From the IMG/VR virus record IMGVR_UViG_3300034117_002447, positions 62,001 through 126,000 of that record: a DNA stretch of 64,000 nt. The stretch is one strand, 5' to 3'. The notes beneath the pieces were generated by a model that was not told the DNA's origin, made no database searches, and worked only from the letters and a program-made list of their open reading frames with translations. Shown here piece by piece: positions 17,678 through 52,503 of this stretch; the first letter of the stretch is position 1, and each line of letters begins with the position of its first letter. The translations under genes were made by a program, and so were the position numbers.

Positions 17678-18241
17678 TTACTTTATCATTGCTGCAAGTT
17701 TTTCGTTTGCTTGATCGATCTTAGAGAATTTAGACTCAAAGAAAGACTTTAACTTGGCAACGATTGCTGTGATTTTACCAGACAACCTAGCAACGATCGC
17801 TTTAGCTTTATCAGTTAATTTAGATTCATCTAGTTTTTCAATATCGTATGAGTGTTTTACGTTTGATATTGCTGTGTTTTGTCTAACACATTCGTTGATA
17901 ATTGCTTGAGCAGCAGCATCGACTAACCCTAGTGCCTGCTCTACAGCTTTAGCATAAGATGGGTTTTCAGAAGATCCGCCGTATCTTGAAATCTTGATAA
18001 CGTATTTTTCAGTTGTTGCAAGCTTATCATTTAGGACTTTCATTGCATCAAAGATCGGCTTCATTGTTGCATCAAATGCACCAAGCTCAGTATTGATAGC
18101 TTTTGTTTCAGCTGTCAATTCTTTTAATCGAGTTTTGATTTCGTGAATTCTATCAAGCTTAGCAACGATAGTTTTATCTTTGATTTGAGCTTCGTTAATC
18201 TTTGCTTCGTTAACAAATTGTGTGAATCTTTTAAGTTTCAT
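17678..18241 (-). CDS. Coiled-coil protein with capsid-targeting-like N-terminus
   Basis: MKLKRFTQFVNE; ATAAATAA upstream. Confidence 0.7.
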   Translation of the reverse strand: MKLKRFTQFVNEAKINEAQIKDKTIVAKLDRIHEIKTRLKELTAETKAINTELGAFDATMKPIFDAMKVLNDKLATTEKYVIKISRYGGSSENPSYAKAVEQALGLVDAAAQAIINECVRQNTAISNVKHSYDIEKLDESKLTDKAKAIVARLSGKITAIVAKLKSFFESKFSKIDQANEKLAAMIK

Positions 18242-18267
18242 TTTAAAAAGTAATTTTTGTTTATTTA

Positions 18268-18819
18268 TTAATAACGATCATCGTCGTAATCATCGTAGTC
18301 AGGCTCATCAGGTTCAAAATCCTCAACCGCTCTATCGAGAGCAGAGTCAGTTCTTTTTTTGAAAGTACCAGTTAAATCGACTAGAGTATTTGAATCGTAA
18401 AGAGCTTTGAATTTATTAATGAAGTCCTTGAGCTCTTCTCCTGTAATTTCTTCTTGCTCTGCATCGTATATTAAATCGCCAATTGCTGCATATTCATCAG
18501 CTCCTTCAAATCCCATGCTTTTTAACTCTTCAGCTTCAGGGGAATCTAGCATGGCTTTAACCTGCGAAATTACTGAAGGATCAGTTACTTTATACACTCC
18601 GTCTACTCCATCAAAGTCAACATCATCAACTGAATAGCCGCCAACGAATCCGACACTGCTATCGTCAGGCTCATAATCGAAAGATACGTCTAGTGTAACA
18701 AGCCAAATTATGTAGATTATTTCGTCTATTAAGAATATATTTTCTTCAACTTCAATAACTGACGAAGATTCTGTTATCAAGCTCTCTTTTACAAATTGTG
18801 AAAATCTCTTAAGTTTCAT
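18268..18819 (-). CDS. Acidic protein with capsid-targeting-like N-terminus
   Basis: MKLKRFSQFVKE; ATAAATAA upstream. Confidence 0.7.
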   Translation of the reverse strand: MKLKRFSQFVKESLITESSSVIEVEENIFLIDEIIYIIWLVTLDVSFDYEPDDSSVGFVGGYSVDDVDFDGVDGVYKVTDPSVISQVKAMLDSPEAEELKSMGFEGADEYAAIGDLIYDAEQEEITGEELKDFINKFKALYDSNTLVDLTGTFKKRTDSALDRAVEDFEPDEPDYDDYDDDRY

Positions 18820-18840
18820 TAGGGATCTTATTTTTATTAT

Positions 18841-19098
18841 TTATCCCTTAGTTCTGCCCAAAACTTCTACTGATACAGATACTCCATCTGGATTCTTTCT
18901 AACTCTGATAGTCGCTTCATCGAATCCCCTAATCCACAGTAGATCTTCAAGTACTTCCTGAACATCGTCCGGATAGACTTCCGGATGAACTAGCCCCGGT
19001 TGGTACGGGTCATGTTCTAATTTCTCAGTAAACTCAAGAACGAGACGTTTCATGTCCGCCTCGTTCTTTAGTGCATTTAATATAGAGCCTTTTGCCAT
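18841..19098 (-). CDS. Hypothetical protein
   Basis: Coupled ORF. Confidence 0.6.
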   Translation of the reverse strand: MAKGSILNALKNEADMKRLVLEFTEKLEHDPYQPGLVHPEVYPDDVQEVLEDLLWIRGFDEATIRVRKNPDGVSVSVEVLGRTKG

Positions 19099-19796
19099 TA
19101 CGATACGTATTTTGCAAAGTTAACTGCTGCCTTGTAAGCATCTTCATACGAATGAATTGTCTTAGCACCACGTAGTCTAAAAGGAATATGATCTACTGCC
19201 CAACCAGCAAGGGTCATTTCTTCTTCTGACGCTTTATGGTCAGAGGTACTCTTTGCCCATTCTTCGCACTCTTTATAATACGAGTCCAGGTGCTTGCCGT
19301 AGAACTTTTCGTATTGAGGAAGGTCTTGTTCAGCAGGTTTCCATTTAGCATCAAATAGTTTATCGCCTTTTCCGAATGCACAAGAAGCACGGTGAGAATA
19401 ACCAATCCACTGCTTTGCCTTCTTACTCCATGCAGTATGAGGATGAGATCCCTTTGTTGCTCTGAGGCCATTGTTGTAGTACCACCAACCTTCTTCAATT
19501 GATCCAACGTAAACTCCGTCTGGATTCATGCATGAATTGGGTAATGAGTACTCATCGTCTGGTCCGAACTTATGAACTCCTACCTTTAGCCCAGTAGTTG
19601 CTTCAATTTGTTTAATACATTCAGGATTTACAGCCCAACCTTCCAAATCTCTTTCAGGTCGGATTCGGCTTACTAACTTAGTAAATCCCAGATCCAAGTG
19701 GATCTTATTTAATTTAGTTTTGCCAGTGTAGTGAGGAAATCTCTCGAACTTCAACTGAATTTTGCCAAGGTATGGCGTTTGATTTTTAATTAACAT
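19098..19796 (-). CDS. Hypothetical phage protein
   Basis: WIGYSHRA...FGKGDKLFD motif. Confidence 0.65.
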   Translation of the reverse strand: MLIKNQTPYLGKIQLKFERFPHYTGKTKLNKIHLDLGFTKLVSRIRPERDLEGWAVNPECIKQIEATTGLKVGVHKFGPDDEYSLPNSCMNPDGVYVGSIEEGWWYYNNGLRATKGSHPHTAWSKKAKQWIGYSHRASCAFGKGDKLFDAKWKPAEQDLPQYEKFYGKHLDSYYKECEEWAKSTSDHKASEEEMTLAGWAVDHIPFRLRGAKTIHSYEDAYKAAVNFAKYVS

Positions 19797-19810
19797 ATAC
19801 TGTTATTTTT

Positions 19811-19999
19811 TTAATAAGGATCAACTACCTCATCGACTGCGTCAGATAAGTCTTCGCCGACCGAGTTTATTAAATCCTTTGTTGCGGTAGCTTCGCCACC
19901 GGTTGCCACGTCAACTGCATCCTTTACGACTGCGATTGGTGACAATGCTGTTTTTACTGTTGCGCTTGCTATATTAGCGATTGCTCCGAATAGTCCCAT
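19811..19999 (-). CDS. Hypothetical protein
   Basis: Short amphipathic ORF with A-rich start. Confidence 0.6.
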   Translation of the reverse strand: MGLFGAIANIASATVKTALSPIAVVKDAVDVATGGEATATKDLINSVGEDLSDAVDEVVDPY

Positions 20000-20015
20000 T
20001 GTTTATTGATTTTTT

Positions 20016-20103
20016 TGGCGGAGGATGTAGGATTCGAACCTACGGTACCTTGCGGTACAACAGTTTTCAAGACTGCCGCGATCGACCACTCTGCCAATCC
20101 TCC
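20016..20103 (-). tRNA. tRNA-Ser(TGA)
   Basis: GCAGT-CTTGAAA-ACTGT; long variable arm; G73; CCA. Confidence 0.97.
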
Positions 20104-20109
20104 TTTGAG

Positions 20110-20373: not shown

Positions 20374-20381
20374 ATTGATTT

Positions 20382-20600: not shown

Positions 20601-20607
20601 AGAGTTA

Positions 20608-21569: not shown

Positions 21570-21572
21570 AAG

Positions 21573-22094: not shown

Positions 22095-22135
22095 GTTTCT
22101 GGTTATTTTTGTTTTTAATTTAGAGAATTATTATA

Positions 22136-23281: not shown

Positions 23282-24106
23282 ATGCTATTAAAGAATGGAT
23301 CTAATGGCCCAGAGGTTGCCAAAATGCAAGCACTCCTAGGAGTAGGCGCAGATGGAAGCTTCGGACCTGGAACAGAAACCGCTGTCAAAGCATGGCAGCA
23401 AGCAAACGGGCTTACTCCTGACGGTATCGTCGGAGATGCTACTTGGGCTAAGATGTTTGGTGCAGCTCCAGTTGCAGCTCCAGCAGCTACGCCAATCCCA
23501 CCATCAAGTTTTAAACTTGAAAAACTAGCTGGACATGTACCAGCAGCAGTAATCGCTCAAATTCCTGACACAGCTGCAAAATTCGGAATCACTAATCCTT
23601 TAAGATTAGCTCACTTCCTTGCGCAATGTGGACACGAAAGTGGAGGATTCAAAGCAGTTAACGAGAATCTAAACTATTCAGCTGACGGTCTTAAAAAGAT
23701 CTTCGGAAAGTATTTTCCTGGTAACTTAAACGAGTCTTATGCTCGTCAACCTGAAAAAATCGCTGCTAGAGTGTATGCTTCTAGAATGGGTAATGGAGAT
23801 GAAGCTTCGAAAGAAGGTTTTAAATTCAGAGGTCGCGGTTACATTCAATTGACTGGTAAATCGAATTACACAAACTTTGCAAAATTTATCGGCGAGGATA
23901 CTGTTGCTAATCCGGATCTAGTCGCTACAAAATACCCACTCGCATCGGCTGCTTTCTTTTTTCAGTCTAATGGCTTATGGGCGATTTGTGATAAAGGAGC
24001 AGACACTGCTGCTGTAACTGCGGTAACTAAGAGAGTTAATGGTGGAACGATTGGTTTGGCTGACCGTATTAAACACTTTAACGAGTATTACGCTTTATTA
24101 AAATAA
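23282..24106 (+). CDS. Endolysin: peptidoglycan-binding domain + GH19 catalytic domain
   Basis: DGSFGPGTETAVKAWQ...DGIVG; HFLAQCGHESGGF, ENLNYS, FRGRGYIQLTGK, TKRVNGG. Confidence 0.92.
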   Translation: MLLKNGSNGPEVAKMQALLGVGADGSFGPGTETAVKAWQQANGLTPDGIVGDATWAKMFGAAPVAAPAATPIPPSSFKLEKLAGHVPAAVIAQIPDTAAKFGITNPLRLAHFLAQCGHESGGFKAVNENLNYSADGLKKIFGKYFPGNLNESYARQPEKIAARVYASRMGNGDEASKEGFKFRGRGYIQLTGKSNYTNFAKFIGEDTVANPDLVATKYPLASAAFFFQSNGLWAICDKGADTAAVTAVTKRVNGGTIGLADRIKHFNEYYALLK

Positions 24107-24124: not shown

Positions 24125-26047
24125 ATGAAAAAAATAATCTTTATTCTATTCGCACTAGTCACGTGCGCACTCTCTACTGGAGTTTATGCTCAAAGTGGAC
24201 CTCCTGCCCCAGGCGCAGGAATTTGGACAATCATTGATACGACATATCAAGTTGGTACAAGTACGCTAGGTCAGTCCAAAGCCAGAATCACGCTAAAGAA
24301 TGCAACTATCTCAAAATACACAGGTATTCAAACTCGAATATTTTACGATAAGGATGCATTTGCTAGTGCATCAGTTGCGCTAGTTGGATCGCCTACTAAC
24401 TTATATTTACAGTCAGTAGATAGTAATGCTACCGGTTACGTAACCCTTTCATTAGTGTATACTGGAAACAGCAGTACTTATACTCTAGCGGACGGTGAAA
24501 CCTTTGAAATAACCTTTACTCACGTTGCAGCTGCATCGTTTTATGCGTTACCCTCAATCAGTGCTCTTACGTTTAGTGGCGCAGCTTCTTTTACTACACT
24601 CGCTGCATCTCAGACAGGTTTAGATACTACTCTAAGCAAGCATAGCTACGGCGGTGTATGGGAACAGCCTACTTTAGACTTCCATGGTAAATTTACAAAC
24701 GTTACTGGAACTGGAGCAAAGAACTTAACTTTAGCTCTTGAGAAAAAGGTAAAAGCTGGAGGTACTTGGGGAACTCATGATACGTACGTAACTGACCTAA
24801 GTGGAAATTTTGCATTTAGCGAAATTATTGATACTACTTATTATGATGTACGCCTTGCAATTAAAGGTGATACGATGACGGTAGGAAACGTTATATCAAC
24901 AGCAGATGCTCAATTAATTAATCAATGGGTGTTAGGGTCAGCGACTCCTTCCGGATTCGACTTCTATACAGCAGATGTTAACGGTTCAACTAACGTAACA
25001 ATAACTGATGCATACGGAGTATTTGGTAGAATTGCTGGAAGATTCACTGAATGGCCTAATGCCGTTGAGGATGTTAAGTTCTTTACTGCTGCCCAATACA
25101 CAACAATCACAGGATCTCCATCGACTAACTATACTTCAACTTATGCTGGAGTAACAAACTTCTACTACGACATTTTACCAGGACAACCTGATTCAGTTCA
25201 ATATTACGTACTTGTTCCAGGAGATGCAAACGGTACGGGTTACAACATGGCTCGTTTAACGCCAATTGAAGTAATGATCAATCCACCGGCTGGAACCCCA
25301 GCTCAAACTGAAAACGTAATTGATATGACAGTTGAATACGATTTTCCAACGAGCTCAATTGAAGTTAATCTTCCTAATCTTTCTGTAAATTCAGGAAATC
25401 TAGTAGAAATACCGGTTACTGTTAAAACTGGAGGAAAGGATATTTCGTCTCTTCAATTAGCAATGTTATACGATCAGACCTTATTGGAATTTAAAGACAT
25501 TACTAACTCTGCTAAATCAATGCAGTGGATGTCTTCATTCAATCCAACTGGCGGAATTATCGAATGGGCCGGTTACGATCCATCAGCTAACAAAAGCTAC
25601 ATGATTCCAGATAATTATGAAGTTTTTAAATTGAGATTTATCGCACTTAAACCTCAAATTGATTGGGAGGCATCGCCTTTGTATACTTCTAGAAAATTCT
25701 CAGGAGACAATCAATCTAGGGATTTATCAATCACCGCAGCAAACGGCATCTTAATCGTTGCTAAAATGGCTGGACCTTCTGGTCAATTGGATAACTTTGA
25801 AATTACCGCATTTCCCAATCCAACTACTGGAGAGATAAGCTTTGACTTCTCAGTTAAGAATAGCGGAATGGTTAAGTTAGTAATCGTTGACCTAAACGGA
25901 TCAGAACAATTTGTTATACTTGATCAAGACATGCCAGCTGGAAAATACGTATACTCTTCCAATATTAATCAGTTAACTAGCGGATTATACGTTGCTTCTT
26001 TACAGGCAGTTGATCAAATTAACTCTACTAAAATCATAAAAAAATAA
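24125..26047 (+). CDS. Secreted protein with dockerin-like repeat, cohesin-like domain and T9SS type A C-terminal sorting domain
   Basis: Signal peptide; ADVNGSTNVTITDA; LVEIPVTV...SLQLAMLYD; FPNPTTG...SGLYV...KIIKK. Confidence 0.75.
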   Translation: MKKIIFILFALVTCALSTGVYAQSGPPAPGAGIWTIIDTTYQVGTSTLGQSKARITLKNATISKYTGIQTRIFYDKDAFASASVALVGSPTNLYLQSVDSNATGYVTLSLVYTGNSSTYTLADGETFEITFTHVAAASFYALPSISALTFSGAASFTTLAASQTGLDTTLSKHSYGGVWEQPTLDFHGKFTNVTGTGAKNLTLALEKKVKAGGTWGTHDTYVTDLSGNFAFSEIIDTTYYDVRLAIKGDTMTVGNVISTADAQLINQWVLGSATPSGFDFYTADVNGSTNVTITDAYGVFGRIAGRFTEWPNAVEDVKFFTAAQYTTITGSPSTNYTSTYAGVTNFYYDILPGQPDSVQYYVLVPGDANGTGYNMARLTPIEVMINPPAGTPAQTENVIDMTVEYDFPTSSIEVNLPNLSVNSGNLVEIPVTVKTGGKDISSLQLAMLYDQTLLEFKDITNSAKSMQWMSSFNPTGGIIEWAGYDPSANKSYMIPDNYEVFKLRFIALKPQIDWEASPLYTSRKFSGDNQSRDLSITAANGILIVAKMAGPSGQLDNFEITAFPNPTTGEISFDFSVKNSGMVKLVIVDLNGSEQFVILDQDMPAGKYVYSSNINQLTSGLYVASLQAVDQINSTKIIKK

Positions 26048-26054
26048 ACAAACA

Positions 26055-26396
26055 ATGTCTGAGGAAACAAACGCAGCAGAAACAAATGATGGAACATGGT
26101 CAGGTCTTAAGAAGACCCTGATCGGTACGATCTCTACGGCAGTTTTAGCTGGAGGTACATGGCTTACAACTACTCTATTTAACGGAGGTGACCATGAAAA
26201 AGAAGAAACGAAAACTGAACAGGTTGCACCAGCAGCTCAACCAGTTATCAACGTTAATCTTGAAAACAATAATACAAATCAACAAAAACAATCAGGCGGA
26301 ACTAACACAGTAATCCGTGAGAGAGTTGTTGAGAAAGCTCCAGCTGAAAAACCAGCGGAAAAGAAGAAGAGCGAGTCTGAAGACGCTCCTTGGTAA
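26055..26396 (+). CDS. Hypothetical membrane-anchored protein
   Basis: One TM helix, charged tail. Confidence 0.65.
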   Translation: MSEETNAAETNDGTWSGLKKTLIGTISTAVLAGGTWLTTTLFNGGDHEKEETKTEQVAPAAQPVINVNLENNNTNQQKQSGGTNTVIRERVVEKAPAEKPAEKKKSESEDAPW

Positions 26397-26457
26397 TCAG
26401 AAGGCGGATTAACGTCCGCCTTTTTATTTTCAGAACTAAAAATAAACTACTACTACA

Positions 26458-26820
26458 ATGTCTAATTTGAAAAAATTATTAATCGGTGAATCTGCATACG
26501 TAAAGGTTGAAGACAAGAATCGCTTCTACTACATGCTACAACAAATGCAGTCAAACCGTTGGAAAATTACAGGAATCGTTCTATTTCTTTTCTTCTTTAT
26601 TATTGCTGGAATTAATTCAGCTGTATTTTTTGGAGTAACAATCGCAGAAGATTGGAAAGAATTACTACTTCTTTTATTGGGAGCCTTTGTTGGTAACCTA
26701 AATAAAGTAGTTGACTACTGGTTCAATTCAGAAGATCGTGATAAAATGTTAATTCAAAAGGTTGACGAAGAAGATGGAGTATCTCTTTCTAATACTACTT
26801 CAAATAACGTAACCGAATAA
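26458..26820 (+). CDS. Two-TM membrane protein (holin-like)
   Basis: Two TM helices ending VVDYWF. Confidence 0.55.
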   Translation: MSNLKKLLIGESAYVKVEDKNRFYYMLQQMQSNRWKITGIVLFLFFFIIAGINSAVFFGVTIAEDWKELLLLLLGAFVGNLNKVVDYWFNSEDRDKMLIQKVDEEDGVSLSNTTSNNVTE

Positions 26821-26822
26821 TC

Positions 26823-27542: not shown

Positions 27543-27556
27543 AATATGAAACGCAA

Positions 27557-30402: not shown

Positions 30403-30422
30403 ATAAAAAAAACAAATTAAAT

Positions 30423-30704
30423 ATGGCAGAAGAAACAAACCCTACTTCAGGATTTACGGATACCTTCTTTTCTAAACTAAAAGAACAATCATTTACCATC
30501 GTACTTATGATAGCGGTTATTTGGTATCAAGGCGTGATGATGGAAGAGCGTGTAGCGTATTGGCAAAAACTATATGAAGCACAAAAAGCCTATACTGAGC
30601 AAACAGTAAAGGATGATAAACAAATTATGCTCGATCGAATACAATACTTACAAGACCAACGTGATAAATACGTTGAGGATGCAATAATTGAACTAAAAAA
30701 ATAA
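30423..30704 (+). CDS. TM + coiled-coil hypothetical protein
   Basis: Hydrophobic segment then heptads. Confidence 0.6.
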   Translation: MAEETNPTSGFTDTFFSKLKEQSFTIVLMIAVIWYQGVMMEERVAYWQKLYEAQKAYTEQTVKDDKQIMLDRIQYLQDQRDKYVEDAIIELKK

Positions 30705-30717
30705 TAAATTTTATAAG

Positions 30718-42812: not shown

Positions 42813-44249
42813 TTAGACAGTTCTTGCTAAATTCAGAATTTGATCTTTCGCGGCAAGCACGGCAGTAATCTTTGCCTTAATCTTTGGATCAGGCCAGTTG
42901 TTTACATTTCTGGTTAAGAGTTCAAAGCCTCTTTCTGTCTTAGCAAAGATTGCATCAACATCTTCTTGAGAGATTTTACCTACTAGAAGTTTATGGTATA
43001 GCTTAGCAGCGAACATTGAAAGTATTCCATGTTTCTTGAATCCTTCCAACATTGCTTCAGTTGAGAAATTCTCTGATTCAAATTCGTTATCAATAATAAT
43101 TAGCAAATCTCTTTCAACCTGTTCTCTAGCGACTGGATCAGTTAGGGTTTCTAGATCATGACCTGCAACCGCAAGTGATTGGATCTTTGCATCAACTCCT
43201 GCTTTAGACATAATATTTGCAAGAACAGTCTTCACCACTATCTCAGACGGAAGTAGTGCAATTACTTGATTAACAAGATCTTCCGGATAGCCGTTCATTT
43301 GTAAATGAGTAGCTGGATCAGAATCTTTCTTTATATTGCGGTCGTTTGCATCGTGTGACGCTTTAACACTTGAGTCTGAGGCAAGGACTGTTGTTCCAGT
43401 TACAAACATTGGATCACTATTCGGAACATTAAAGTTAAGGATATTTAATTGAACTCCACGACTTACATAAGAGTCCCAACTTCCAGTGTTTAGACACCAG
43501 TTAGCCATACGGAATATTGCTTTCTGTGCAGCTTCAGTCCTAACTGAAAAGACCACGTAATTATTATCATCGTACATTACCTGAATTTCAGGAGAAAGAC
43601 TTTCAGCTTGAGCTACTAATTTTTGAGAACCTTCATCTGAGCTTGAAATATCTAATGCATACTTCATGAAATCTTGAATAGTTCGGTAGCGAGCAACTTT
43701 GGACATTACTCTCTTTTGAATAGCTTCGCCCTGATCAGCGATTGTCCAACCAATACGAATAAGTTCCTTTTGTTTTTCCGGATCAAGAGCACGAGCCTGA
43801 TCTCTAAGTTCTCTAGGAAGAGCATCAATTATCCATTTACCTTTGGAATTAAATTCAAATGTTCTGAACTGGTCCATTAGCGCTTCAAAACCTGAAACTG
43901 TAGATCCAGGTTCAGGATTTCCGTTTGAATAGGCATCTAGTGTATATGGAAGAGTGCTAACTAGTTGACGGTACTTAATCATTTGGTCCAATAGTTGTTT
44001 CAATTGGTCTACTGAAATTCTCTGTTCGAAATGGAATTTAACGAAAGTTCCTAAGTAACCATTGTATTTTTGACCAAGTAATTCAAGTACTTCTAGGTAT
44101 TGACGATTGTTTAGAGCACGAGTCTGTTCCTCAGGAGTAAGTTCACTTACTTCTTTTCCTAGAGACTGTGCTGCTCTCTTAAGCATGTATGCTTTTGCTG
44201 CTTGGACATTCTCAAATATCCAGCTTTCGTATAGCTGTATGTGTTTCAT
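42813..44249 (-). CDS. Protein with capsid-targeting-like N-terminus
   Basis: MKHIQLYESWIFE; internal NWCL. Confidence 0.7.
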   Translation of the reverse strand: MKHIQLYESWIFENVQAAKAYMLKRAAQSLGKEVSELTPEEQTRALNNRQYLEVLELLGQKYNGYLGTFVKFHFEQRISVDQLKQLLDQMIKYRQLVSTLPYTLDAYSNGNPEPGSTVSGFEALMDQFRTFEFNSKGKWIIDALPRELRDQARALDPEKQKELIRIGWTIADQGEAIQKRVMSKVARYRTIQDFMKYALDISSSDEGSQKLVAQAESLSPEIQVMYDDNNYVVFSVRTEAAQKAIFRMANWCLNTGSWDSYVSRGVQLNILNFNVPNSDPMFVTGTTVLASDSSVKASHDANDRNIKKDSDPATHLQMNGYPEDLVNQVIALLPSEIVVKTVLANIMSKAGVDAKIQSLAVAGHDLETLTDPVAREQVERDLLIIIDNEFESENFSTEAMLEGFKKHGILSMFAAKLYHKLLVGKISQEDVDAIFAKTERGFELLTRNVNNWPDPKIKAKITAVLAAKDQILNLARTV

Positions 44250-45385
44250 CGACGTTGGTCTCTGATATTTTTGATTTCATTAACTTGAATAGTTGGGTAC
44301 ATGTCCAAGTCAATCTCTTCAGTTGGACACTCAAGCTTCTGTATGAATTGCAGTCCAGCTTGAGATAATTTAGTTAATAACTGATTCGTAACCTGAGTAC
44401 TAGCAGCCGATACGTAATCAAGAATAGTCGTAGACTCAAGCTTGATATTTAATCTGCTAATATCGGTTGGGATATTGTTGTCGTAAGGGTAGCCTAACCC
44501 AAATCGGAGCTGGCCGTTTGCTGAAACGGTCCATACTAAATTAGGATTAGACATTGCATCTATTTCTGACTGAGTGTATTTACTCCACTCGTTTAACGGC
44601 AGCTCAAGAGGTTTTGACTGATCGGTTTGCTTTTGTAGCAGCTTTATTAATTTTGCCATCTCAACTGACCCGTGATACAGACCTCGAATTGGAAGAGCTT
44701 TAATTTGTGTTCTATCTAAATTAACGCCGCGCTCTGCAAATTTAGTCTCAAGAGTTGAATACATTAATTCGACTTGATTCTCTTTCTTTACATCACTTGC
44801 ATAAGCTCTTTTACTTGGAAGGTAGTCTACTTCTAGAACTAAATTCTCCTGAACCCATAGACTTGCCTGCTTCATGAACTCTACTGGAGAAAGACCTCCA
44901 TCTAGTTCTTTAAGCTTTTGATCCATGTAAGTCATCTTAGGATTAGGCTTCTGCACGATTCGACGTACTACATTAATTGAAGAAAAGAATCCAATTGCTG
45001 TATCAGTTAATGGAGAATAGTTAGGATTTTTAGATAGCATTAAGGTACGGTTTCCCAGTTGAATATTACTTGAACATGGATAAAATCCTTTTGCCAATAG
45101 TGACTGTAATTCAGGCGAAGCTAGCGAATCAGTTAACCAAGTAAGAGAAGGGTACTCAGAAATTTCAGCTAACCACTCAGCTGACCATCGAGGATGAGTC
45201 GCATCAGCGTCTTTAAGAAGTTTACGATTAATTCCAGCGATCTTGCTCAGAAGAGCCTTTCCTTGTTGAGCGTAATCGTCTGCTGATATAATTGCGAAAT
45301 CGCGCAGAGCATCGAGCTCAGCCAATTGAGATTGGCTTGTAGATAATTCGTCTTTCCAGTTTTCAAACAGTTGTAAGTGCTTCAT
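44246..45385 (-). CDS. Protein with capsid-targeting-like N-terminus
   Basis: MKHLQLFENWKDE. Confidence 0.7.
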   Translation of the reverse strand: MKHLQLFENWKDELSTSQSQLAELDALRDFAIISADDYAQQGKALLSKIAGINRKLLKDADATHPRWSAEWLAEISEYPSLTWLTDSLASPELQSLLAKGFYPCSSNIQLGNRTLMLSKNPNYSPLTDTAIGFFSSINVVRRIVQKPNPKMTYMDQKLKELDGGLSPVEFMKQASLWVQENLVLEVDYLPSKRAYASDVKKENQVELMYSTLETKFAERGVNLDRTQIKALPIRGLYHGSVEMAKLIKLLQKQTDQSKPLELPLNEWSKYTQSEIDAMSNPNLVWTVSANGQLRFGLGYPYDNNIPTDISRLNIKLESTTILDYVSAASTQVTNQLLTKLSQAGLQFIQKLECPTEEIDLDMYPTIQVNEIKNIRDQRR

Positions 45386-45395
45386 TAACAATTAA

Positions 45396-46229
45396 TTAGA
45401 TTTTACCTGCGGTACCAGCCGTACCTGATGTACCGGTAGAACCAGCATTCATTAACTGACTTTTAATTACTTCAGTTCTAGCTGCAACCTTTTTTCTTAT
45501 TTCAAGATATTTTGCATCGATCTTTCCATCCTTCGTTTTTCCAGTAGTAAAGTCAACAACGTTTGTTAACTTAGCTTGCTCTTCAACCTCTTTCATTAAC
45601 TTTAAAAATTCAGCATCCGAATTAAGTCTCTTGTTTAGTTCCTTGTTTTGAAGAGATGCTTGATACGCTGGAATACTGGTTGCTGCTTGATATGCAACTC
45701 CAGTAACATCGGCGACATGCGATCTAAAAGCTGTCATAATATCTTTTCCAAAGAAACCTTCTGCGTAATCTCCCTTGCTTCCAGCAGTTCCAGCTGTACC
45801 GCTTGTTCCAGTTGAACCAGTCGGTGCTGTGTTAATAGCAGCTGCAATTTTACCAAGAATTTGATCTCCTGCAACTGGATCAGTTAAATTAAATATGTAG
45901 GATGCTTGATACTTGTAGACTCCACCTCCAGCTGCAGGCGGTTCGTTAATTTCGCTAGCTTGAAGAGCCGCAGCCACTCCACCAAGATCAGTAAGTTTTT
46001 TCTCAACGTCCTTGTTCTTAGCCGTTAAAAGGACTAATACGTTTCCTGGTGCTTTTTTGGTGGATTCATTATCTTCAGTCGCAATATAGATTCGACCTAG
46101 TGTAAATTTAGCGTATGATGTTCCAGCACTGTATACTGCAGCTCCAGTTAAGACTGATTTAGTTGGATCGAACTTATATGCTTGGGCTTCGTTTTGGAAA
46201 GCTTCAAATAATTTAATGTACTTTGGCAT
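45396..46229 (-). CDS. Protein with capsid-targeting-like N-terminus and GTS/GTA repeats
   Basis: MPKYIKLFEAFQNE; GSTGTSGTAGTAG twice. Confidence 0.7.
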   Translation of the reverse strand: MPKYIKLFEAFQNEAQAYKFDPTKSVLTGAAVYSAGTSYAKFTLGRIYIATEDNESTKKAPGNVLVLLTAKNKDVEKKLTDLGGVAAALQASEINEPPAAGGGVYKYQASYIFNLTDPVAGDQILGKIAAAINTAPTGSTGTSGTAGTAGSKGDYAEGFFGKDIMTAFRSHVADVTGVAYQAATSIPAYQASLQNKELNKRLNSDAEFLKLMKEVEEQAKLTNVVDFTTGKTKDGKIDAKYLEIRKKVAARTEVIKSQLMNAGSTGTSGTAGTAGKI

Positions 46230-46258: not shown

Positions 46259-46681
46259 CTAGTATTCAGAGGTTAAAGCTCGGCTGAGATCTCGTTCTTT
46301 AATAACATGTCGCTTATCCCAATCCTTCTTTCCTTTGGCTAGAGCAATCGCAATCTTAATTAAACCTGACGAGTTAACGAAGATCTTTACTGGAACGATT
46401 GTGAGGCCCCTGTCCATCAGTTTATTTAGTTTCTTTAGTTCCTTTTTAGTTAAGAGTAGCTTCCTCTCTCGTTTACCTTGGTGACTGTATGCTGAGGTTG
46501 ATTCTTTTATGTACAGTTCTCGACAGAAGCATTCACCTGACCGAAGTTCGCACCAGGATCCAGTAAAGTCAAGGTTACCCGCCTTAATTGACTTGACCTC
46601 TGATCCAGTTAAGGAGATCCCAGCGGTCCATGTCTCTAAAAATGTGTATTCGTGTCGGGCTTTTCGGTTTTCTGCTATCAT
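46259..46681 (-). CDS. smpB: SsrA-binding protein
   Basis: NRKARHEY, AGISLTGSEVKS, RKLLL, AKGKKDWDKR. Confidence 0.92.
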   Translation of the reverse strand: MIAENRKARHEYTFLETWTAGISLTGSEVKSIKAGNLDFTGSWCELRSGECFCRELYIKESTSAYSHQGKRERKLLLTKKELKKLNKLMDRGLTIVPVKIFVNSSGLIKIAIALAKGKKDWDKRHVIKERDLSRALTSEY

Positions 46682-46702: not shown

Positions 46703-47548
46703 TTATGCAGATTTAACAATGTTAGATAGAGTTATTGCTCGATTACCGACCTGTTTTGCCCATGAAGAATTTAACATCTCTTTGGATGCAGCCTTGAAAT
46801 TCTTTGAAGCTATGTGAAGTAGAAACGTGTTAAACTCAGATAGGCCTTTAGCTCCTAAATTAAATACCATTTCAATTAAGACTCCTTGTACTGATTGTGG
46901 CAAGCTTGGCCAAACTTTAGCTATGCTGACTTTCCCATTATCTGATACTAAAGTTTTAGCTAAAGACTTTGCGGCTTGAAGATCAGTATGCAGAAGAGCT
47001 TTAATCTGCTGATCGGTTAATGCAGACTGGCCTGACTTTATCTTTATTGGATTTGCACCAACTGACCTAAGCATTGACGTTGAGTCAGAGCGGTTTAGAT
47101 TGAATCCTACACCGACTGTTGGATTTCCTTTAGAGTCTATGTACTTCTTTGGTTTGTAGCCTTCATGTTGGATTACCCTAGGCTCAATAACCTTTAATAC
47201 TGTATCTTCAGGTGGAGGAGGAGCAACGAAAGATCCTAAGTACTTCTCAGCTCTAATATTCTTTATGTGAGTGTTGATTTGATCCAAGTAATCTTGATCA
47301 AAGGATCCAAGTTCTCCGGTAATTGCATCGCCAACACTTGCGTAATCCCAGCTCTTTGTATCGAACCCGGTTTTAAGTGCTTTGTTTACACGAACCATGG
47401 ATGCAGCATCGGGAATAGACTTGATTGCTGATACTAAATCACCCTCTGCAGTTCCTGAACCAGCAACGGCTATTTGAATTTTATCAGCGATTTGATCAGC
47501 AGTAAGGGATTCGTTGACCCAACTTTCAAATATCTTAAGATGCTTCAT
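46703..47548 (-). CDS. T4-type (GH24) lysozyme with capsid-targeting-like N-terminus
   Basis: HEG...YIDSKGNPTVGVG, EMVFNLG, EMLNSSWAKQVGNRA; MKHLKIFESWVNE. Confidence 0.85.
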   Translation of the reverse strand: MKHLKIFESWVNESLTADQIADKIQIAVAGSGTAEGDLVSAIKSIPDAASMVRVNKALKTGFDTKSWDYASVGDAITGELGSFDQDYLDQINTHIKNIRAEKYLGSFVAPPPPEDTVLKVIEPRVIQHEGYKPKKYIDSKGNPTVGVGFNLNRSDSTSMLRSVGANPIKIKSGQSALTDQQIKALLHTDLQAAKSLAKTLVSDNGKVSIAKVWPSLPQSVQGVLIEMVFNLGAKGLSEFNTFLLHIASKNFKAASKEMLNSSWAKQVGNRAITLSNIVKSA

Positions 47549-47551
47549 TAC

Positions 47552-48910
47552 TTATTTAAGTAAGTTACTTAACCTTTCAACTTCAGCGAAGTCTCTATTA
47601 TCTAGAGCTGCATCAATCATGTTCTGAATATCAACTTGATCAAGTTCTCTATCGTTGGCTGGCATAGTAAAGTCAGGCTCATCGTAGCTAGAATCAGATT
47701 GAGAGTCTTCCCAATCAGCAAGTTCCTGTTTAATTAGACGGATCAAGTTATTTACTATGGCTTTGGCTTTAGGAAAAGATTCTTTAGCAGCAGCGATTTC
47801 AGACTCTGTGTATTGAGGTTCCTGTTCGCCAACTGTTCTGTATAACGGAGCTGCTGTGAATATTAATTTCATTAGGTCCAAGAAGTCAGAATCAGATACG
47901 ACTGTTGAGTCAATCATTTTACCCCATACGTATTCTCTACCGTTTTCAATATCAAATACTTCTTCGAAAGATTGGATAAAATCTCTAAGATCAGCTGCAG
48001 TTAATTTAGCACGTTTAAGATCCTGTACTTCGTCAGCGGCAGTATCAGTATTCATGAACACTTTTCGGATAGTCTCATCGTCTAGATTAGCAAGACCTCC
48101 TTGATTAATCAGTCCCCAAATTGCTTTAATAGATTCATGGAATAACATTGCTTGGTCCATTCCTCTAATAACTAAGGTAGGAACAGTCGTTTCGTCAACT
48201 GTCTCTTCTTCAGACTCTCCGTCTTCTTGACCTTGATCATCATCGTTATCCTTTTTAGATTTAGGTTTCCATTCAATTTTTGAAATACCGGCAAGGGAAT
48301 CTCCTTGCTCAATCATTTTTGCTCCAACCTCTTCAGGTATTCTCCAGTCTCTAGCATTACAAATATCAGTAATCGTAACTAGCAGCTCTACCATTTTACG
48401 GGCATTAGCCTCTCCAAATAATTGAGTTAGACCTTCCATGTTCTCATCGCCCATTAACATCTTCTTTGAATTAATGGCTTCGCCTTGAGCGATCATGTTT
48501 AGGATCTTACGTTTATTGATTGCTGTTTTAGTATCCTCATCCTCAATCTCTTTGAAATTGGGTTTGTCCTGATCTTCTTGATCGTCGTCATCAGTCTCCT
48601 TCATCTTCGCTTTCATTTCACGAGGATCGTTTGGAATCTTAATGTCTAACTCAGTTTCTCCAAGAATTGAACCGTACTGGCTTAGGATTACTGAAGTAGT
48701 TAACTCTTCAAGCTGGCGTTCTTTACCGCGTTGTAACATCTGTACTTCACGGACAGCTCTCATTAGGCTACCCATATCTCGACCGTGTCTCTGTTCAACT
48801 TCACGAGCGCTCTGTTCTGCTCGTTTATCAAGAGATCCTAAGTATTCTGGAGTTATTGCTGGGTTCTGACGAATGTCAGCTTCATTTAAGAATGTTTTAA
48901 AGCTCTTCAT
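47552..48910 (-). CDS. Acidic protein with capsid-targeting-like N-terminus
   Basis: MKSFKTFLNE; C-terminal UVR-like IDAALDNRDFAEVERL. Confidence 0.7.
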   Translation of the reverse strand: MKSFKTFLNEADIRQNPAITPEYLGSLDKRAEQSAREVEQRHGRDMGSLMRAVREVQMLQRGKERQLEELTTSVILSQYGSILGETELDIKIPNDPREMKAKMKETDDDDQEDQDKPNFKEIEDEDTKTAINKRKILNMIAQGEAINSKKMLMGDENMEGLTQLFGEANARKMVELLVTITDICNARDWRIPEEVGAKMIEQGDSLAGISKIEWKPKSKKDNDDDQGQEDGESEEETVDETTVPTLVIRGMDQAMLFHESIKAIWGLINQGGLANLDDETIRKVFMNTDTAADEVQDLKRAKLTAADLRDFIQSFEEVFDIENGREYVWGKMIDSTVVSDSDFLDLMKLIFTAAPLYRTVGEQEPQYTESEIAAAKESFPKAKAIVNNLIRLIKQELADWEDSQSDSSYDEPDFTMPANDRELDQVDIQNMIDAALDNRDFAEVERLSNLLK

Positions 48911-49121
48911 TTGATTCTAGACTTTTTAGGCGAGCAATTACATCCTCAGCTTGAGCCTTAGCTGGCTCAGGTTGTTTAAACGGTTGTTTGCTAGGAATTG
49001 GACTAGGTTTGGGTCTAGTTGCAGGTCGAGTGCTAGGCTCTTTAACTGGCGCAGGTTTAACAATCGGCTCAGTCATTGTGAATTCTGCTATAAATTGTTC
49101 GAATAATTTAATATGTTGCAT
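48897..49121 (-). CDS. Pro-rich protein with capsid-targeting-like N-terminus
   Basis: MQHIKLFEQFIAE. Confidence 0.7.
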   Translation of the reverse strand: MQHIKLFEQFIAEFTMTEPIVKPAPVKEPSTRPATRPKPSPIPSKQPFKQPEPAKAQAEDVIARLKSLESNEEL

Positions 49122-49244
49122 TAAAGATTAATTCTTTTGGTTATTTATCCGTGGGCTATCCGAACTTGATAGCAATCCAAGCGATAAAGACGAACCATCC
49201 TGCAACAAGCAAGAATCCGAGCCAATCATTTGATTTCCAATTTT

Positions 49245-49769
49245 TCATGTATTTGGGTTTATTCGTTTTTGTAAAAAATCCTTTGCCTTAAATAGCTGTG
49301 ATCTACTTGAGGCTTCTTGTATGTTAAGTTCCTTTGCAATTTCCCTATGGGAAAATCCGTCAATTACGTACATGTTAAAAACGGTACGATATCCAATCGG
49401 AAGAGTGCTAATCAGAGACATTAACTCTTCGGCTGATGCTGTTTCATAGTAAGTTGGATCTATACTGACTGCCTCCGCTGTTACTAAGTTACACTCATTA
49501 AACTCGTGCTTGTTCTGCTTGAGTTTAGTAAGCGCAGTATTCACGATGATTCGTCTCATCCACCCTTCAAAGGAACCTTCTCCTTTGAATTTCCCAAGAT
49601 TCTTGTATATTTTATAAAATCCTTCCATCAATACGTCTTCGGCTAACATAGGGTCTTTCATGTACCTCTTTGCGATAGTCATGAATTTACCAGCAAACTT
49701 ATCGAACAGGGTCTTTTGGTATTCTCTATTGTTTTCAATACAGCCTTGAATGAGTTGTTCGTATTCCAT
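49245..49769 (-). CDS. RNA polymerase sigma factor, ECF subfamily (Bacteroidota-like)
   Basis: AEDVLMEGF, GSFEGWMRRIIVN, LPIGYRTVFNMYVIDGFSHREIA; start moved to MEYEQ. Confidence 0.92.
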   Translation of the reverse strand: MEYEQLIQGCIENNREYQKTLFDKFAGKFMTIAKRYMKDPMLAEDVLMEGFYKIYKNLGKFKGEGSFEGWMRRIIVNTALTKLKQNKHEFNECNLVTAEAVSIDPTYYETASAEELMSLISTLPIGYRTVFNMYVIDGFSHREIAKELNIQEASSRSQLFKAKDFLQKRINPNT

Positions 49770-49833
49770 TATTCTACTATACCAACAAAGGCTTCCATGT
49801 GGAAGCCTTTGCTTTAATTTTATATAGTAGTAA

Positions 49834-50148
49834 TTAATTATCAAGCATTGTTACGAATTCAAACCAGCCTACGTCATCAACTCCATTGTCGTATACCCAT
49901 GATACTCGTTGGTCAAATTCAGTTTCATCCTCATCGTCTGAAAAATCTATCCATTTTTCAAGGATTTCAGTTGATTTTCTTTTAAGAAGAGCGATTGCTG
50001 CAGTTACTTCAGGATCTTGATACCACTCTGATACAGCTTCGTCGAATCTTTCGTCAGGTGAACCGTCTGGCTTGCTACGGAAGCCCATGGATTTTAATTC
50101 TTCTTGGTCGTTATCGAATTCTTCGAATAGGTTTACGTGCTGCTTCAT
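49834..50148 (-). CDS. Acidic protein with capsid-targeting-like N-terminus
   Basis: MKQHVNLFEEF; shares EELKSMGF with 18268..18819. Confidence 0.65.
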   Translation of the reverse strand: MKQHVNLFEEFDNDQEELKSMGFRSKPDGSPDERFDEAVSEWYQDPEVTAAIALLKRKSTEILEKWIDFSDDEDETEFDQRVSWVYDNGVDDVGWFEFVTMLDN

Positions 50149-50156
50149 AGAGTTAT

Positions 50157-50738
50157 TTATTTGCTAAAAGCTGCAACGATTTGACCTGATAAGATCTCGT
50201 CCTGCTCCTTCATTCGTCGCTTGTTTGAAGCAATTGCATCCTTTATCAAGGCTGGAACACCTGCACCTATTTTAATTACAACAGACTCCCATTCTCTAGG
50301 AATGTATTCACGGCCCTCTTTGTAGAATTGTCGAGCAAGATCGCCGGCTGGATTATCAGCTAACTGAATTACTTTTTTATCAAGCATATAACTTACGGAA
50401 AGGAACGGATAGTCTCGCATATCGATTTCCCATTGAATGGATACTCCATTTGACAAGCGAACCCAACCATTTGAATTGTCTGTACCTTCTTCAGCTTCAA
50501 CAACTTCGCTTACGCCAGCTTGGGTCTTTAACCAACCGGAATATGTCTCTGGCTCAGTAGGCTCTTCTGCTTTAGGTTCTTCCTGAGTATCGGGCTTCTC
50601 CTCTTCAGGTTCAGCCGGGTCTTCTTCAGTCTCAGCAGGTTTAGTCTCTTCAGGTTCTAGCTCAGGCGCAAATCTCTTACGATCAACGTTATCTTCTACG
50701 TCCTGAAACCAGTTCTCAAAAAGTTTAATATGCTTCAT
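50157..50738 (-). CDS. Acidic protein with capsid-targeting-like N-terminus
   Basis: MKHIKLFENW. Confidence 0.7.
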   Translation of the reverse strand: MKHIKLFENWFQDVEDNVDRKRFAPELEPEETKPAETEEDPAEPEEEKPDTQEEPKAEEPTEPETYSGWLKTQAGVSEVVEAEEGTDNSNGWVRLSNGVSIQWEIDMRDYPFLSVSYMLDKKVIQLADNPAGDLARQFYKEGREYIPREWESVVIKIGAGVPALIKDAIASNKRRMKEQDEILSGQIVAAFSK

Positions 50739-50860
50739 AGGATTATTTATCCTACGTACCAATCTAATACTCTGATCAAGATTTGAGAGAAGCCTATTCC
50801 TGCAAAGAAATAGATTAGGTTATTCAACCATTTTGGGTAATTTTCCATATCTAACATAAT

Positions 50861-51292
50861 TTAAAGTTTCTGATTTTTTGCTGCGGTCGTTGCTAAGTAA
50901 TCGCAACGCTCGTTTTCAGGATGGCCGTTATGACCCTTAACCCAACTGATAGTCAAGTCGAAGTTAGGAGCAACCATCAAGTATCTTCTCCAAAGATCCT
51001 CGTTCTTTTTACCTGCGAAATCAGGCTTCCTTGCCCAATTGTCAACCCAACCCTTAGAGATTGAGTCAACCACGTATTTAGAGTCTGACTCGATCTTGAC
51101 TGGATACTTTGTCTTGGGAATTGTTTCAAGAGCCTCAACCACGGCAGTGAGTTCCATTCGATTGTTTGTCGTGGCCGGTGTAGATCCAGATAATTCCATG
51201 GTCTTGCCTCGGAATTTCATGACTACGCCCCAACCGCCTGGGCCAGGATTTCCTAACGAACTACCGTCCGTCCATATTTGAAGTGTTTCCAT
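50861..51292 (-). CDS. rnhA: Ribonuclease HI
   Basis: TDGSSLGNPGPGGWG, TTNNRMEL, DSKYV, WVKGHNGHPENERCD. Confidence 0.96.
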   Translation of the reverse strand: METLQIWTDGSSLGNPGPGGWGVVMKFRGKTMELSGSTPATTNNRMELTAVVEALETIPKTKYPVKIESDSKYVVDSISKGWVDNWARKPDFAGKKNEDLWRRYLMVAPNFDLTISWVKGHNGHPENERCDYLATTAAKNQKL

Positions 51293-51410
51293 TATTGTAC
51301 AGCAATTAAGAGCTGAGCGATTGCCCATACGGATATAGTAACGCTAGCTAAAATAATAATAAGCTTTGCTATTGCCTGTCTACGATTCATACTCTACTTT
51401 TTAATTTTAG

Positions 51411-51512
51411 AAGTCAGGACAGGATTCGAACCTGTTACCGCTTTGCCATAAAGAGTCGGCCTTACCGCTACTCAACCTTGGGGAGGTGCTTCCAACCAAT
51501 GGACTCCTGACT
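51411..51512 (-). ncRNA. tRNA-like RNA (AGTCAGG family, copy 2)
   Basis: AGTCAGG...ACAGGTTCGAATCCTGTCCTGACT; D-like TCCA-TTGGT-TGGA; unrelated core. Confidence 0.7.
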
Positions 51513-51685
51513 AAAAATGTACGTTTTTGTATTACCCCCAGAACGTACAAACTGTGCCGACACACGATTCGGTGGGCGTAGTGCGCATTGACTAAAGAGT
51601 ACCGAAGTACTCTAACCTAACGGTCAAGAGGCTATCCCCGTCTTCGATCCTTACTCAGCGCTAAGCAGAGGGCTTGCTGTTAGGA
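51513..51685 (-). ncRNA. Candidate structured ncRNA under a GGAAAC-N16-GTATAAT promoter
   Basis: C(UUCG)G hairpin AGAGTAC-TTCG-GTACTCT, CCTAAC/GTTAGG and TGTACGTT/AACGTACA stems; promoter 51688-51716. Confidence 0.55.
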
Positions 51686-51784
51686 TTATTATACTAAAAA
51701 ATGGGCTACAGTTTCCTGAGGCCCATTAGCAATACGAATGAAATCGTAAAGGTTGCTGTTGATTTAATCGATCACAAACGCTTG

Positions 51785-52180
51785 TTAGTTCTGATAGTCT
51801 TGGTAAGATTTTTCTTCAACTAATTTAGAACCGGTTAACGCATTAATCTGTTTCTTTACCTCAGCTCTGTCATCGTTTGTGTAGTACACAGACCTTGCAA
51901 GTTCAATAAAATCAGACCCGAAACTTTCATCTCGTTCGCATTCTCTGATTTGATCTTCGATGTTCCATAGTGTTTTATTAATATTTAGTAAATCTAAATA
52001 AAGAACCCTAAGCTCTTCTGTTTCAAGAGTTGCATCATATATTTCTTCGGCGGCTGCTACCAGTATTACATATTCCTGTAACACGTTATTTCGTTTAACT
52101 GGGTCTAAGATATGCTCAAGCTTAATTTCTAGGATAGAAAGTTTATCTAAGATCTCGCCAGTAGATACTTCAATTTTCAT
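51785..52180 (-). CDS. DUF6165-like protein
   Basis: VSTGEILDKLSILEIK, LWNIEDQIR, LARSVYYTNDDR, VEEKSY. Confidence 0.75.
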   Translation of the reverse strand: MKIEVSTGEILDKLSILEIKLEHILDPVKRNNVLQEYVILVAAAEEIYDATLETEELRVLYLDLLNINKTLWNIEDQIRECERDESFGSDFIELARSVYYTNDDRAEVKKQINALTGSKLVEEKSYQDYQN

Positions 52181-52200
52181 TAGTTGTTAAATTATAAGGT

Positions 52201-52503
52201 TTATATGTTTCCAAGCCCAAGTTCCCAAGTAATCGAGCGCCATTCAAAGTCAGCAATTACTTCGTCTGCTGTGATATCGTTGTCTGAACAAAGTTCCTTT
52301 ACGTACTTGTACATTTCTTCGGGGGAATATTCTCTAGCAGATATTCGGCCTGAGTCTACCGCATAATCGTATTCGTCAAGGATCTCGTCCGAAACTTGTT
52401 GAGCAAATCGTCTAAGTTTAAGGTCGTCTGTGTCAAAGCCCAATGCAGATAATTCGTCTTCGTCTTCTCGGTTAATCTCTTCAAATAGTTTAATGTGCTT
52501 CAT
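52201..52503 (-). CDS. Acidic protein with capsid-targeting-like N-terminus
   Basis: MKHIKLFEE; ELSALGF. Confidence 0.65.
   Translation of the reverse strand: MKHIKLFEEINREDEDELSALGFDTDDLKLRRFAQQVSDEILDEYDYAVDSGRISAREYSPEEMYKYVKELCSDNDITADEVIADFEWRSITWELGLGNI

Follow-up and report, generated by a model that had tools for sequence, protein, structure and literature searches.

A short N-terminal peptide resembling the T4 capsid-targeting sequence on thirteen unrelated proteins in a freshwater phage genome segment

The 64,000-nt stretch of DNA analysed here, taken from IMG/VR virus record IMGVR_UViG_3300034117_002447 and referred to as the window, contains thirteen genes between positions 17,678 and 52,503 whose otherwise unrelated products begin with the same short peptide, called the tag below. 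The tag resembles the capsid-targeting sequence (CTS) of phage T4, MKTYQEFIAE, which undergoes a single cleavage after its last Glu and is sufficient to package foreign proteins (PMC8442874; PMC5694885). Genome-wide counts were made on a 270,136-bp IMG/VR phage record (G000), in which the window corresponds to bases 174,116-238,115, and the N-terminus scans were based on a crude gene call of 323 genes in this genome. A sequence-only reading of the window had listed thirteen such N-termini. All of them were located in the six-frame translation at their genes, every one on the minus strand, and they proved to be the complete set of tagged genes in the window. The tagged genes are listed below, with scores from the position matrix described after them (aa, amino acids; pI, isoelectric point).

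17678-18241, minus strand: protein of 187 aa with a basic mature part (pI 9.4); tag MKLKRFTQFVNE at 18206-18241, matrix score 26.4; TAAATAA at 18261-18267, 19 nt ahead of the ATG.
18268-18819, minus strand: protein of 183 aa with an acidic mature part (pI 4.1); tag MKLKRFSQFVKE; GGATAAATAA 17 nt ahead of the ATG; unlike the product of 17678-18241 except for the tag.
33005-33556, minus strand: 2H phosphoesterase of 183 aa; tag MLKSFSQFVTGLFE, with the L-F-E site displaced by two residues.
39769-40914, minus strand: nucleotidyltransferase-like protein of 381 aa; tag MKHLKPYNQFLNE; TAAATAA 5 nt before the ATG.
42813-44249, minus strand: protein of 478 aa; tag MKHIQLYESWIFE; it starts before 44246-45385 has ended, which makes the two genes one operon.
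44246-45385, minus strand: protein of 379 aa; tag MKHLQLFENWKDE, with a non-canonical K at the aliphatic position; the ATG start at 45385 was preferred to the TTG at 45391.
45396-46229, minus strand: basic protein of 277 aa; tag MPKYIKLFEAFQNE; GAATAAATAA 20 nt before the ATG.
46703-47548, minus strand: lysozyme of 281 aa; tag MKHLKIFESWVNE; Phage_lysozyme domain at residues 127-270.
47552-48910, minus strand: acidic protein of 452 aa (pI 4.4); tag MKSFKTFLNE, the shortest form, in the same register as MKTYQEFIAE of T4.
48897-49121, minus strand: small basic protein of 74 aa; tag MQHIKLFEQFIAE, score 25.7, with an end (F-I-A-E) identical to that of the T4 CTS; GGATAAATAA 19 nt ahead of the ATG; metatranscriptome contigs span 48723-49246 (weak evidence).
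49834-50148, minus strand: acidic protein of 104 aa; tag MKQHVNLFEEF, then D-N-D in place of [LIV]-x-E; an E-E-L-x-S-M-G-F extension follows the tag.
50157-50738, minus strand: acidic protein of 193 aa; tag MKHIKLFENW, whose P1 column holds Asp; the ATG at 50738 was preferred to the TTG at 50762; GGATAAATAA 4 nt before the ATG.
52201-52503, minus strand: acidic protein of 100 aa; tag MKHIKLFEE-INRE, then a D-E-L-S-A-L-G-F extension; it follows gene 52517-52969, which has an upstream ATAAATAA.

Genome-wide, 34 proteins carried the tag, i.e., the 13 in the window and 21 outside it, or roughly one gene in ten. With the first aromatic residue set as column 0, the consensus was M-K-H-[ILV]-K-x-[FY]-[ES]-[QE]-[FW]-[LVI]-N-E. 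The strict pattern [FY]xx[FWY][LIVMFA]xE was observed 18 times within the first 13 residues, whereas 0.86 were expected, and 500 shuffles gave at most 4. The aromatic columns are part of the pattern by which carriers were selected, but the scan of gapped residue pairs is unbiased, as no pattern was chosen beforehand. Among 2,252 gapped pairs tested there, over the first 12 residues, none was as enriched as Phe with a second Phe three residues later (35 observed versus 7.6 expected; P=4.5e-13). In the position matrix, 34 N-termini scored at least 12 and the next best 7.1, although training on the same 34 makes this separation partly circular. Only 6 of 76,775 internal positions reached a score of 12, and one of these was merely a mis-called start. 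At the tag end, column +4 was [LIV] in 22 of 34 tags and column +6 was Glu in 21 of 34, and the canonical [LIV]-x-E stood at or near its expected place in eight of the thirteen window tags. The residue after [LVI]-N-E was mostly S, N, A or G.

The carriers had been described as unrelated, and residues after position 20 indeed gave no BLASTP pair at E<=1e-3 among the 34. Paralogy of the tagged proteins was ruled out, as no BLASTP similarity was left once the first 20 residues were removed. The tag is also selective and not a habit of the whole locus, because untagged genes, i.e., an ECF-type (extracytoplasmic function) sigma factor, SmpB, RNase H and topoisomerase subunits, are interspersed in the same cluster. 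A literature string search (KLFEEF and similar) found no earlier description of the tag among the papers searched, and searches on the capsid-targeting sequence turned up only T4 and giant-phage work.

Two further observations were made on the tag. The best-scoring tag of the genome (29.2) belongs to L174 (genome 115924-116577), a 217-aa protein encoded beside tail-tube and head genes. Its tag, KIKRFEQFVNE, does not stand at the start but inside the chain at residue 105, where a basic N-terminal half gives way to a very acidic C-terminal half. In some carriers a second element directly follows the tag, i.e., an acidic stretch and then E-L-x-[AS]-[LM]-G-F. This element was found in 52201-52503 and 49834-50148 of the window and in the gene at genome 168865-170196, and L003 has the variant E-E-L-x-D-L-I-G-D-L.

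Selection acts on the tag peptide, because codons vary while the conserved columns keep their residue class. The codons were ATT, CTT, GTT, TTA and ATA at -3, TTC, TTT and TGG at +3, and four different Ser codons at +1, and the substitutions in tag columns were at class level (F/Y, F/W, I/L/V). It could be argued that selection concerns the mRNA instead, an AT-rich unstructured start aiding translation without Shine-Dalgarno pairing. In its favour, the consensus codons are AT-rich (AAA, CAT, ATT, TTT, GAA) and the hosts are probably Bacteroidota. However, besides the constancy of residue class over varying codons, the G/C-containing codons TGG, TTC, TAC and AAC are frequent, and base composition leaves the hydrophobic spacing and the terminal Glu unexplained. 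The untagged neighbours (sigma factor, SmpB, RNase H, topoisomerase) are moreover expressed without a tag. The mRNA explanation was considered extremely improbable.

The functions of the tagged proteins were searched in Pfam, in the Atlas and in structure models. The 2H phosphoesterase named by the sequence-only reading (33005-33556) has both HxT motifs, which are kept in six homologues, and a confident model with the 2H fold. Its Pfam matches, Acb1 with 25.0 bits and 2_5_RNA_ligase2 with 25.3 bits, were both below the 27-bit cut-off. The nearest structures were Acb1, phage and poxvirus cGAMP phosphodiesterases and Usb1, which were near-equal (TM 0.45-0.64). In the AlphaFold2 model, residues 21-183 were confident and residues 1-17 formed a detached low-confidence helix, so that the tag is predicted to lie outside the enzyme fold. 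A homologous 2H enzyme of Maribacter phage Molly has no tag. The lysozyme (46703-47548) was also borne out, with Pfam PF00959 at E=1.1e-9, over the cut-off. For the proposed nucleotidyltransferase (39769-40914), the Pfam matches to NTP_transf_2 and SidM_N were weak, but the Atlas search gave 0.96 to viral NTP_transf_2 clusters. The acidic proteins of the same reading hold as well, with pI 4.1-4.7 in window examples.

Tagged proteins encoded outside the window included a peptidoglycan-binding protein and two hydrolases, one NUDIX and one HAD, and the remaining cargo was mostly acidic and without a family. The computed pI was below 6 in 26 of the 34 tagged proteins. Few were basic, e.g., the product of 48897-49121 and a 121-aa protein encoded beside the capsid gene. 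The product of 42813-44249 matched only viral hypothetical clusters in the Atlas, and no function was found. The Atlas search gave no function for 47552-48910 either, and the Atlas model (predicted local distance difference test score, pLDDT, 0.39) indicates a probably disordered protein. PADLOC gave no meaningful matches for ten cargo proteins. None of the 34 tagged proteins showed homology to T4 internal proteins beyond the tag, i.e., the cargo does not consist of internal protein homologues.

In T4, mutagenesis of the CTS assigned residues 4 and 7 to targeting and residues 8 and 10 to processing, and Asp at position 10 blocked cleavage while targeting stayed intact (PMC9026906). The tag columns 0, +3, +4 and +6 correspond to these four residues, and MKTYQEFIAE fits all conserved tag columns. 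When the N-termini of 260 T4 open reading frames (ORFs) were scored with the matrix trained on the tags of this phage only, gp61.1 ranked first (17.1), ipIII and ipII second and third (both 16.4) and ipI sixth (7.7). The other two places in the top six went to an 80-aa ORF at 15331-15573 and to an ORF that overlaps tRNA genes and is spurious. For three given ORFs, the probability that all of them rank among the best six of 260 is about 7e-6. The claim of a T4-like capsid-targeting N-terminus was therefore strengthened, since the matrix retrieves ipIII, ipII and ipI, the columns match the CTS determinants and the genome has T4-type head machinery. As a side result, T4 gene 61.1 (NC_000866, 18966-19130) encodes a hypothetical 54-aa protein, gp61.1, which starts with MKTFKEFIKE and outscores the known internal proteins.

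The head machinery was found elsewhere in the genome. The S77 prohead protease was recognized by PF03420 (38.4 bits, over the cut-off). Two of its segments, GELDHP and VSSRAAG, could be aligned with the catalytic parts of T4 gp21 (PDB 5JBL), the catalytic His and Ser are present, and the domain (about residues 35-175) was modelled with a pLDDT of 75-87. The start of the gene is a TTG upstream of the first ATG, right behind TATAAATAA, which gives a product of about 661 residues. In this product the protease is fused to a scaffold, the middle of which consists of tandem 14-residue repeats with Y-[ST]-x-Y-[LIV]-[AG]-E, eight in number here, within about residues 290-440, and predicted by the model as long helices. 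The repeat core Y-x-x-Y-[LIV]-[AG]-E resembles the core pattern of the tag. The same fusion, with 6-13 repeats, was present in all six tag-rich phages examined, and in the tag-less Tenacibaculum phage PTm1 the fusion is present with different repeats. The gp23-type capsid protein (PF07068, E=1.5e-41) matched T4 gp23 in the C-terminal half only (E=3e-14).

Sites of the form aliphatic-x-Glu recur in these head proteins. The density of [LIVM]xE was 5.9 per 100 aa in the scaffold versus 1.7 in the proteome, i.e., 3.4-fold (P=4e-10), and the known T4 substrate gp22 had 7.8 versus 1.9 per 100 aa. The capsid protein has I-N-E at residues 16 and 53 and V-L-E at 23, in its propeptide. In Chryseobacterium phage MA9V-1, the scaffold of 1,347 residues has 21 hydrophobic-N-E-[SAG] sites (P=1.6e-21) and the capsid protein contains W-S-E-F-I-N-E. 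Because tag, scaffold and capsid N-terminus all carry aliphatic-x-Glu sites, the tag end, as far as sequence can tell, shares its grammar with the presumed substrates of the head protease.

Directly upstream of the protease-scaffold gene lies L173 (genome 122778-123347), whose product of 189 aa has a DnaJ C-terminal (substrate-binding) domain that only just passes the Pfam cut-off. This neighbour could point to another role, in which the tag is a docking helix for other machinery, i.e., a chaperone of phage or host, a degradation signal for the timing of protein turnover or a multi-enzyme complex, and its likeness to the T4 CTS is convergent. Amphipathic N-terminal helices have many uses, and phages that have an S77 protease and no tags exist. 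However, the DnaJ_C-like gene is not kept in G016, a complete tag-rich genome of 256 kb, and L173 was dropped as a candidate tag receptor for lack of a homologue there. Moreover, the tag end follows the cleavage grammar of scaffold and capsid propeptide, the tag matrix specifically retrieves T4 internal proteins, and a T4-type head was found in every complete tag-bearing record tested. Docking to other machinery is thus a very unlikely account.

The distribution of the tag was searched in other phages. The string MKHIKLFE plus an acidic or amide residue was found at 120 or more IMG/VR loci, at the ORF starts of dozens of different proteins. A gp23 gene was found in 22 of the 49 tag-bearing records tested, including all five complete ones, the rest being fragments. 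Fragment size and completeness estimates gave genomes of 225-700 kb. All four tag-bearing IMG/VR records that were tested for the S77 protease had it, and so did tag-less PTm1. The number of N-termini scoring at least 12 was 24 in G016, 4 in T4, 3 in MA9V-1, 1 (borderline) in pT24 and 0 in both PTm1 and Molly. MA9V-1, the only cultured candidate found for virion analysis, has 3-5 tags of the form MKTFFNFVNE, and the paper that describes it gives an SDS-PAGE gel as its only protein data. From the 642-kb phage LR756502 a sample of 180 kb was scanned, and 15 N-termini in it scored at least 10.

The cargo is almost entirely non-orthologous between G000 and G016. These genomes had 94 reciprocal best hits, comprising 2 of 34 tagged and 92 of 289 untagged proteins (Fisher P=0.001), and the only tagged-tagged reciprocal pair was the 2H enzyme. 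In T-even phages likewise, the internal proteins are diverse as cargo and only the CTS is conserved (PMC3012670).

Small tagged proteins also occur in the head module: here the basic protein of 121 aa is encoded next to the capsid gene, and G016 has one of 130 aa whose gene stands between those for portal and protease. These bear on whether tagged proteins are a payload at all. [quoted passage not shown] The small tagged proteins of the G016 head module sit at the gp67/gp68 position, many tagged proteins are highly acidic and poorly structured (as 47552-48910 with its pLDDT of 0.39), and L174 has its tag inside the chain at residue 105, as in a core protein cut into pieces. However, folded enzymes are tagged as well, i.e., the 2H phosphodiesterase, the lysozyme, the NTP transferase and the NUDIX hydrolase. 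Parts of the assembly would also be expected to be conserved; the cargo is instead non-orthologous, and its fast turnover fits host-directed effectors. A core or filler role was therefore considered unlikely for the tagged proteins.

It is reasonable to consider the tag as a CTS of T4 type, and a probability of roughly 0.7 was given to the reading that it docks on the prohead core, is cleaved by the S77 protease and leaves the cargo to be injected with the DNA. The tag would fold as a short amphipathic helix whose hydrophobic residues stand at -3, 0, +3 and +4 from the first aromatic. During head building, this helix would dock the protein onto the prohead core, i.e., the protease-scaffold fusion. 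The resemblance of tag and repeat suggests how docking may occur, the tag being a single-copy mimic of one scaffold repeat unit. After shell assembly, the S77 protease would cut behind the tag-terminal Glu ([LIV]-N-E, then a small residue), with the same cleavage grammar serving scaffold dismantling and capsid propeptide trimming. The freed cargo would remain in the head and enter the cell together with the DNA. What was observed directly is the motif, its restriction to N-termini, its agreement with the CTS determinants, the T4-type head machinery, the site grammar of the scaffolds and the turnover of the cargo; physical packaging, cleavage and injection of the tagged proteins are inferred by analogy with T4, and repeat mimicry is the presumed way of docking.

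Several points weigh against this reading. The canonical aliphatic-x-Glu at the fixed position is absent from 13 of the 34 tags (5 of 13 in the window). The scaffold repeats share the core pattern but do not reach high scores with the tag matrix, having Tyr and not Phe or Trp at +3, and Ile at -2 and not -3. Most cargo is acidic (pI 4.1-5.7) whereas the T4 internal proteins are basic, and some of it looks metabolic (NUDIX, HAD), so that the need for packaging such enzymes is not obvious. Phages with the S77 protease can be without the tag (PTm1, Molly, and pT24 with its one borderline case); the tag is therefore not obligatory for a T4-type head. Finally, no cultured phage with many tags was found.

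What is new here compared with T4 is the scale, the cargo of enzymes and acidic proteins, the fusion of protease and scaffold, and the tag-repeat resemblance. Judging by the aligned columns, the functional determinants of the CTS appear conserved over a very large evolutionary distance, and the tag appears greatly expanded in this lineage. A wider statement can be put forward only tentatively. It is possible that T4-like jumbo and huge phages, probably infecting Bacteroidota, of 225-700 kb including the 640-kb 'Mahaphage' type and mostly uncultured, preload about a tenth of their proteome through a scaffold-mimicking tag.

The sequence-only reading had noted (A)TAAATAA before most of the tagged genes or their operons, which agrees with its occurrence within 70 nt upstream of 8 of the 13; four more (42813, 44246, 47552, 52201) lie directly behind a gene with the motif. 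Genome-wide, 60 of 78 copies of ATAAATAA were within 60 nt upstream of a gene and in sense orientation. The motif preceded 20 of 37 tagged versus 43 of 286 untagged genes, and it was also found before the sheath gene and the protease-scaffold gene. The late promoter of T4 is TATAAATA, which ATAAATAA of this phage resembles, and ATAAATAA may thus be a late promoter. The spacing from motif to ATG fell in two classes, i.e., 4-5 nt and 16-23 nt (window copies e.g. at 47552-47558, 50153-50159 and 50743-50749), and some of the copies close to the ATG share bases with the stop codon of the gene before them. With the short spacing, transcripts would have no leader or almost none, or the motif would take part in translation re-initiation. 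Metatranscriptome contigs covered only 48723-49246 and 49425-49810, which includes part of the sigma gene. DNA carry-over is possible for these contigs, and they therefore say little on timing or transcript starts.

The phage genome has a G+C content of 38%. Its capsid protein was best matched by uncultured huge phages (LR756500, 37% identity) and Prevotella Lak phages (32-38%), and more weakly by jumbo phages of Tenacibaculum, Flavobacterium and Chryseobacterium. The host is probably a member of Bacteroidota, because of these capsid-protein relatives and the Bacteroidota-style signal peptides encoded in the window. Near-verbatim copies of the phage sequence were found in more than 20 metagenome runs of lake water, dated 2016 to 2024, and three more IMG/VR records of about 271 kb each contain the same phage. 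It is a persistent freshwater population.

Other features of the window were as follows. An array of 18 tRNA genes (14446-17404) lies immediately upstream of the first two tagged genes, and separate tRNA-Ser and tRNA-Leu genes were found away from it (20016-20103 and 462-542). Rfam gave two weak tRNA-like matches at 55360-55650, of which one measured 126 nt. SmpB (PF01668, E=1e-44) is encoded at 46259-46681, within the tagged-gene cluster; ARAGORN and Rfam gave no tmRNA gene in the window. The untagged ECF-type sigma factor (regions 2 and 4) at 49245-49769 and RNase H at 50861-51328 also lie between tagged genes. On the plus strand, 24125-32380 contains at least seven genes for products with Bacteroidota-style signal peptides or lipoprotein-like leaders, and this block is preceded by a lysozyme-like gene at 23282-24106. 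A G+C-rich island (0.51 versus about 0.39 elsewhere) with short ORFs on both strands occupies 55500-58000.

Head-carried proteins act before phage gene expression, which makes them prime candidates for first-strike counter-defence; IPI of T4 acts against GmrSD. Injected proteins are normally found only through proteomics of cultured phages. If the tag is a true CTS, a motif scan would list the injected proteins of hundreds of uncultured jumbo and huge phages, i.e., a ready catalogue of candidate anti-defence and host-takeover effectors. If preloading occurs, enzymes potentially able to destroy nucleotide immune signals at infection would be part of this arsenal. The match of tag and repeat is a concrete candidate answer to an old T4 question, i.e., what the CTS binds. 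A short conserved loading tag could also serve to package foreign proteins into Bacteroidota phages.

The closest known system is the CTS of T4. In both phages an N-terminal peptide of about ten residues, with aromatics three apart and then aliphatic-x-Glu, is carried by unrelated proteins, the genome has an S77 protease and a gp23 head, and the cargo changes between related phages while the tag stays. In contrast, carriers number 34 in this phage but 3-4 in T4. The consensus here is also longer and has one more hydrophobic residue, at -3, and Asn at P2; enzymes occur among the mostly acidic cargo, and the protease is fused to a repeat scaffold. The variable internal protein loci of T-even phages (T2, T6 and relatives), which encode basic proteins with CTS-like leaders (PMC9026906; PMC3012670), show the same clusters of tagged genes and rapid cargo turnover, but differ in scale and host phylum. 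In the T4 genome, the ip genes adjoin a tRNA cluster (beside ipI), lysozyme e, nudE and 57B. Here, too, two tagged genes border on a tRNA array, but the neighbouring enzymes are untagged in T4, whereas the lysozyme, NUDIX hydrolase and 2H enzyme are tagged in this phage.

In phiKZ-like giant phages such as SPN3US, many head-internal proteins, among them ejection proteins, are processed after Glu by a T4-related protease, and their propeptides are thought to target the prohead (PMC5694885). Many proteins with after-Glu sites for a T4-related prohead protease are common to both systems, in the present case as read from the sequence. However, those propeptides are 80-160 residues long and share no common short motif (PMC5694885), whereas a readable consensus of 10-14 residues was found here. 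Cargo-loading peptides of encapsulins are short and portable as well, and one such peptide is enough to bring unrelated enzymes into an HK97-fold shell. They sit at the C-terminus, bind the shell protein directly, are not removed by a protease and are not delivered to another cell, unlike the reading proposed for the tag. In T7, gp16 has a transglycosylase domain, i.e., a cell-wall-degrading enzyme is carried in the head and ejected at infection. This is a precedent for the role proposed for the tagged lysozyme at 46703-47548, although the core proteins of T7 are structural components that are conserved and have no removable tag in common.

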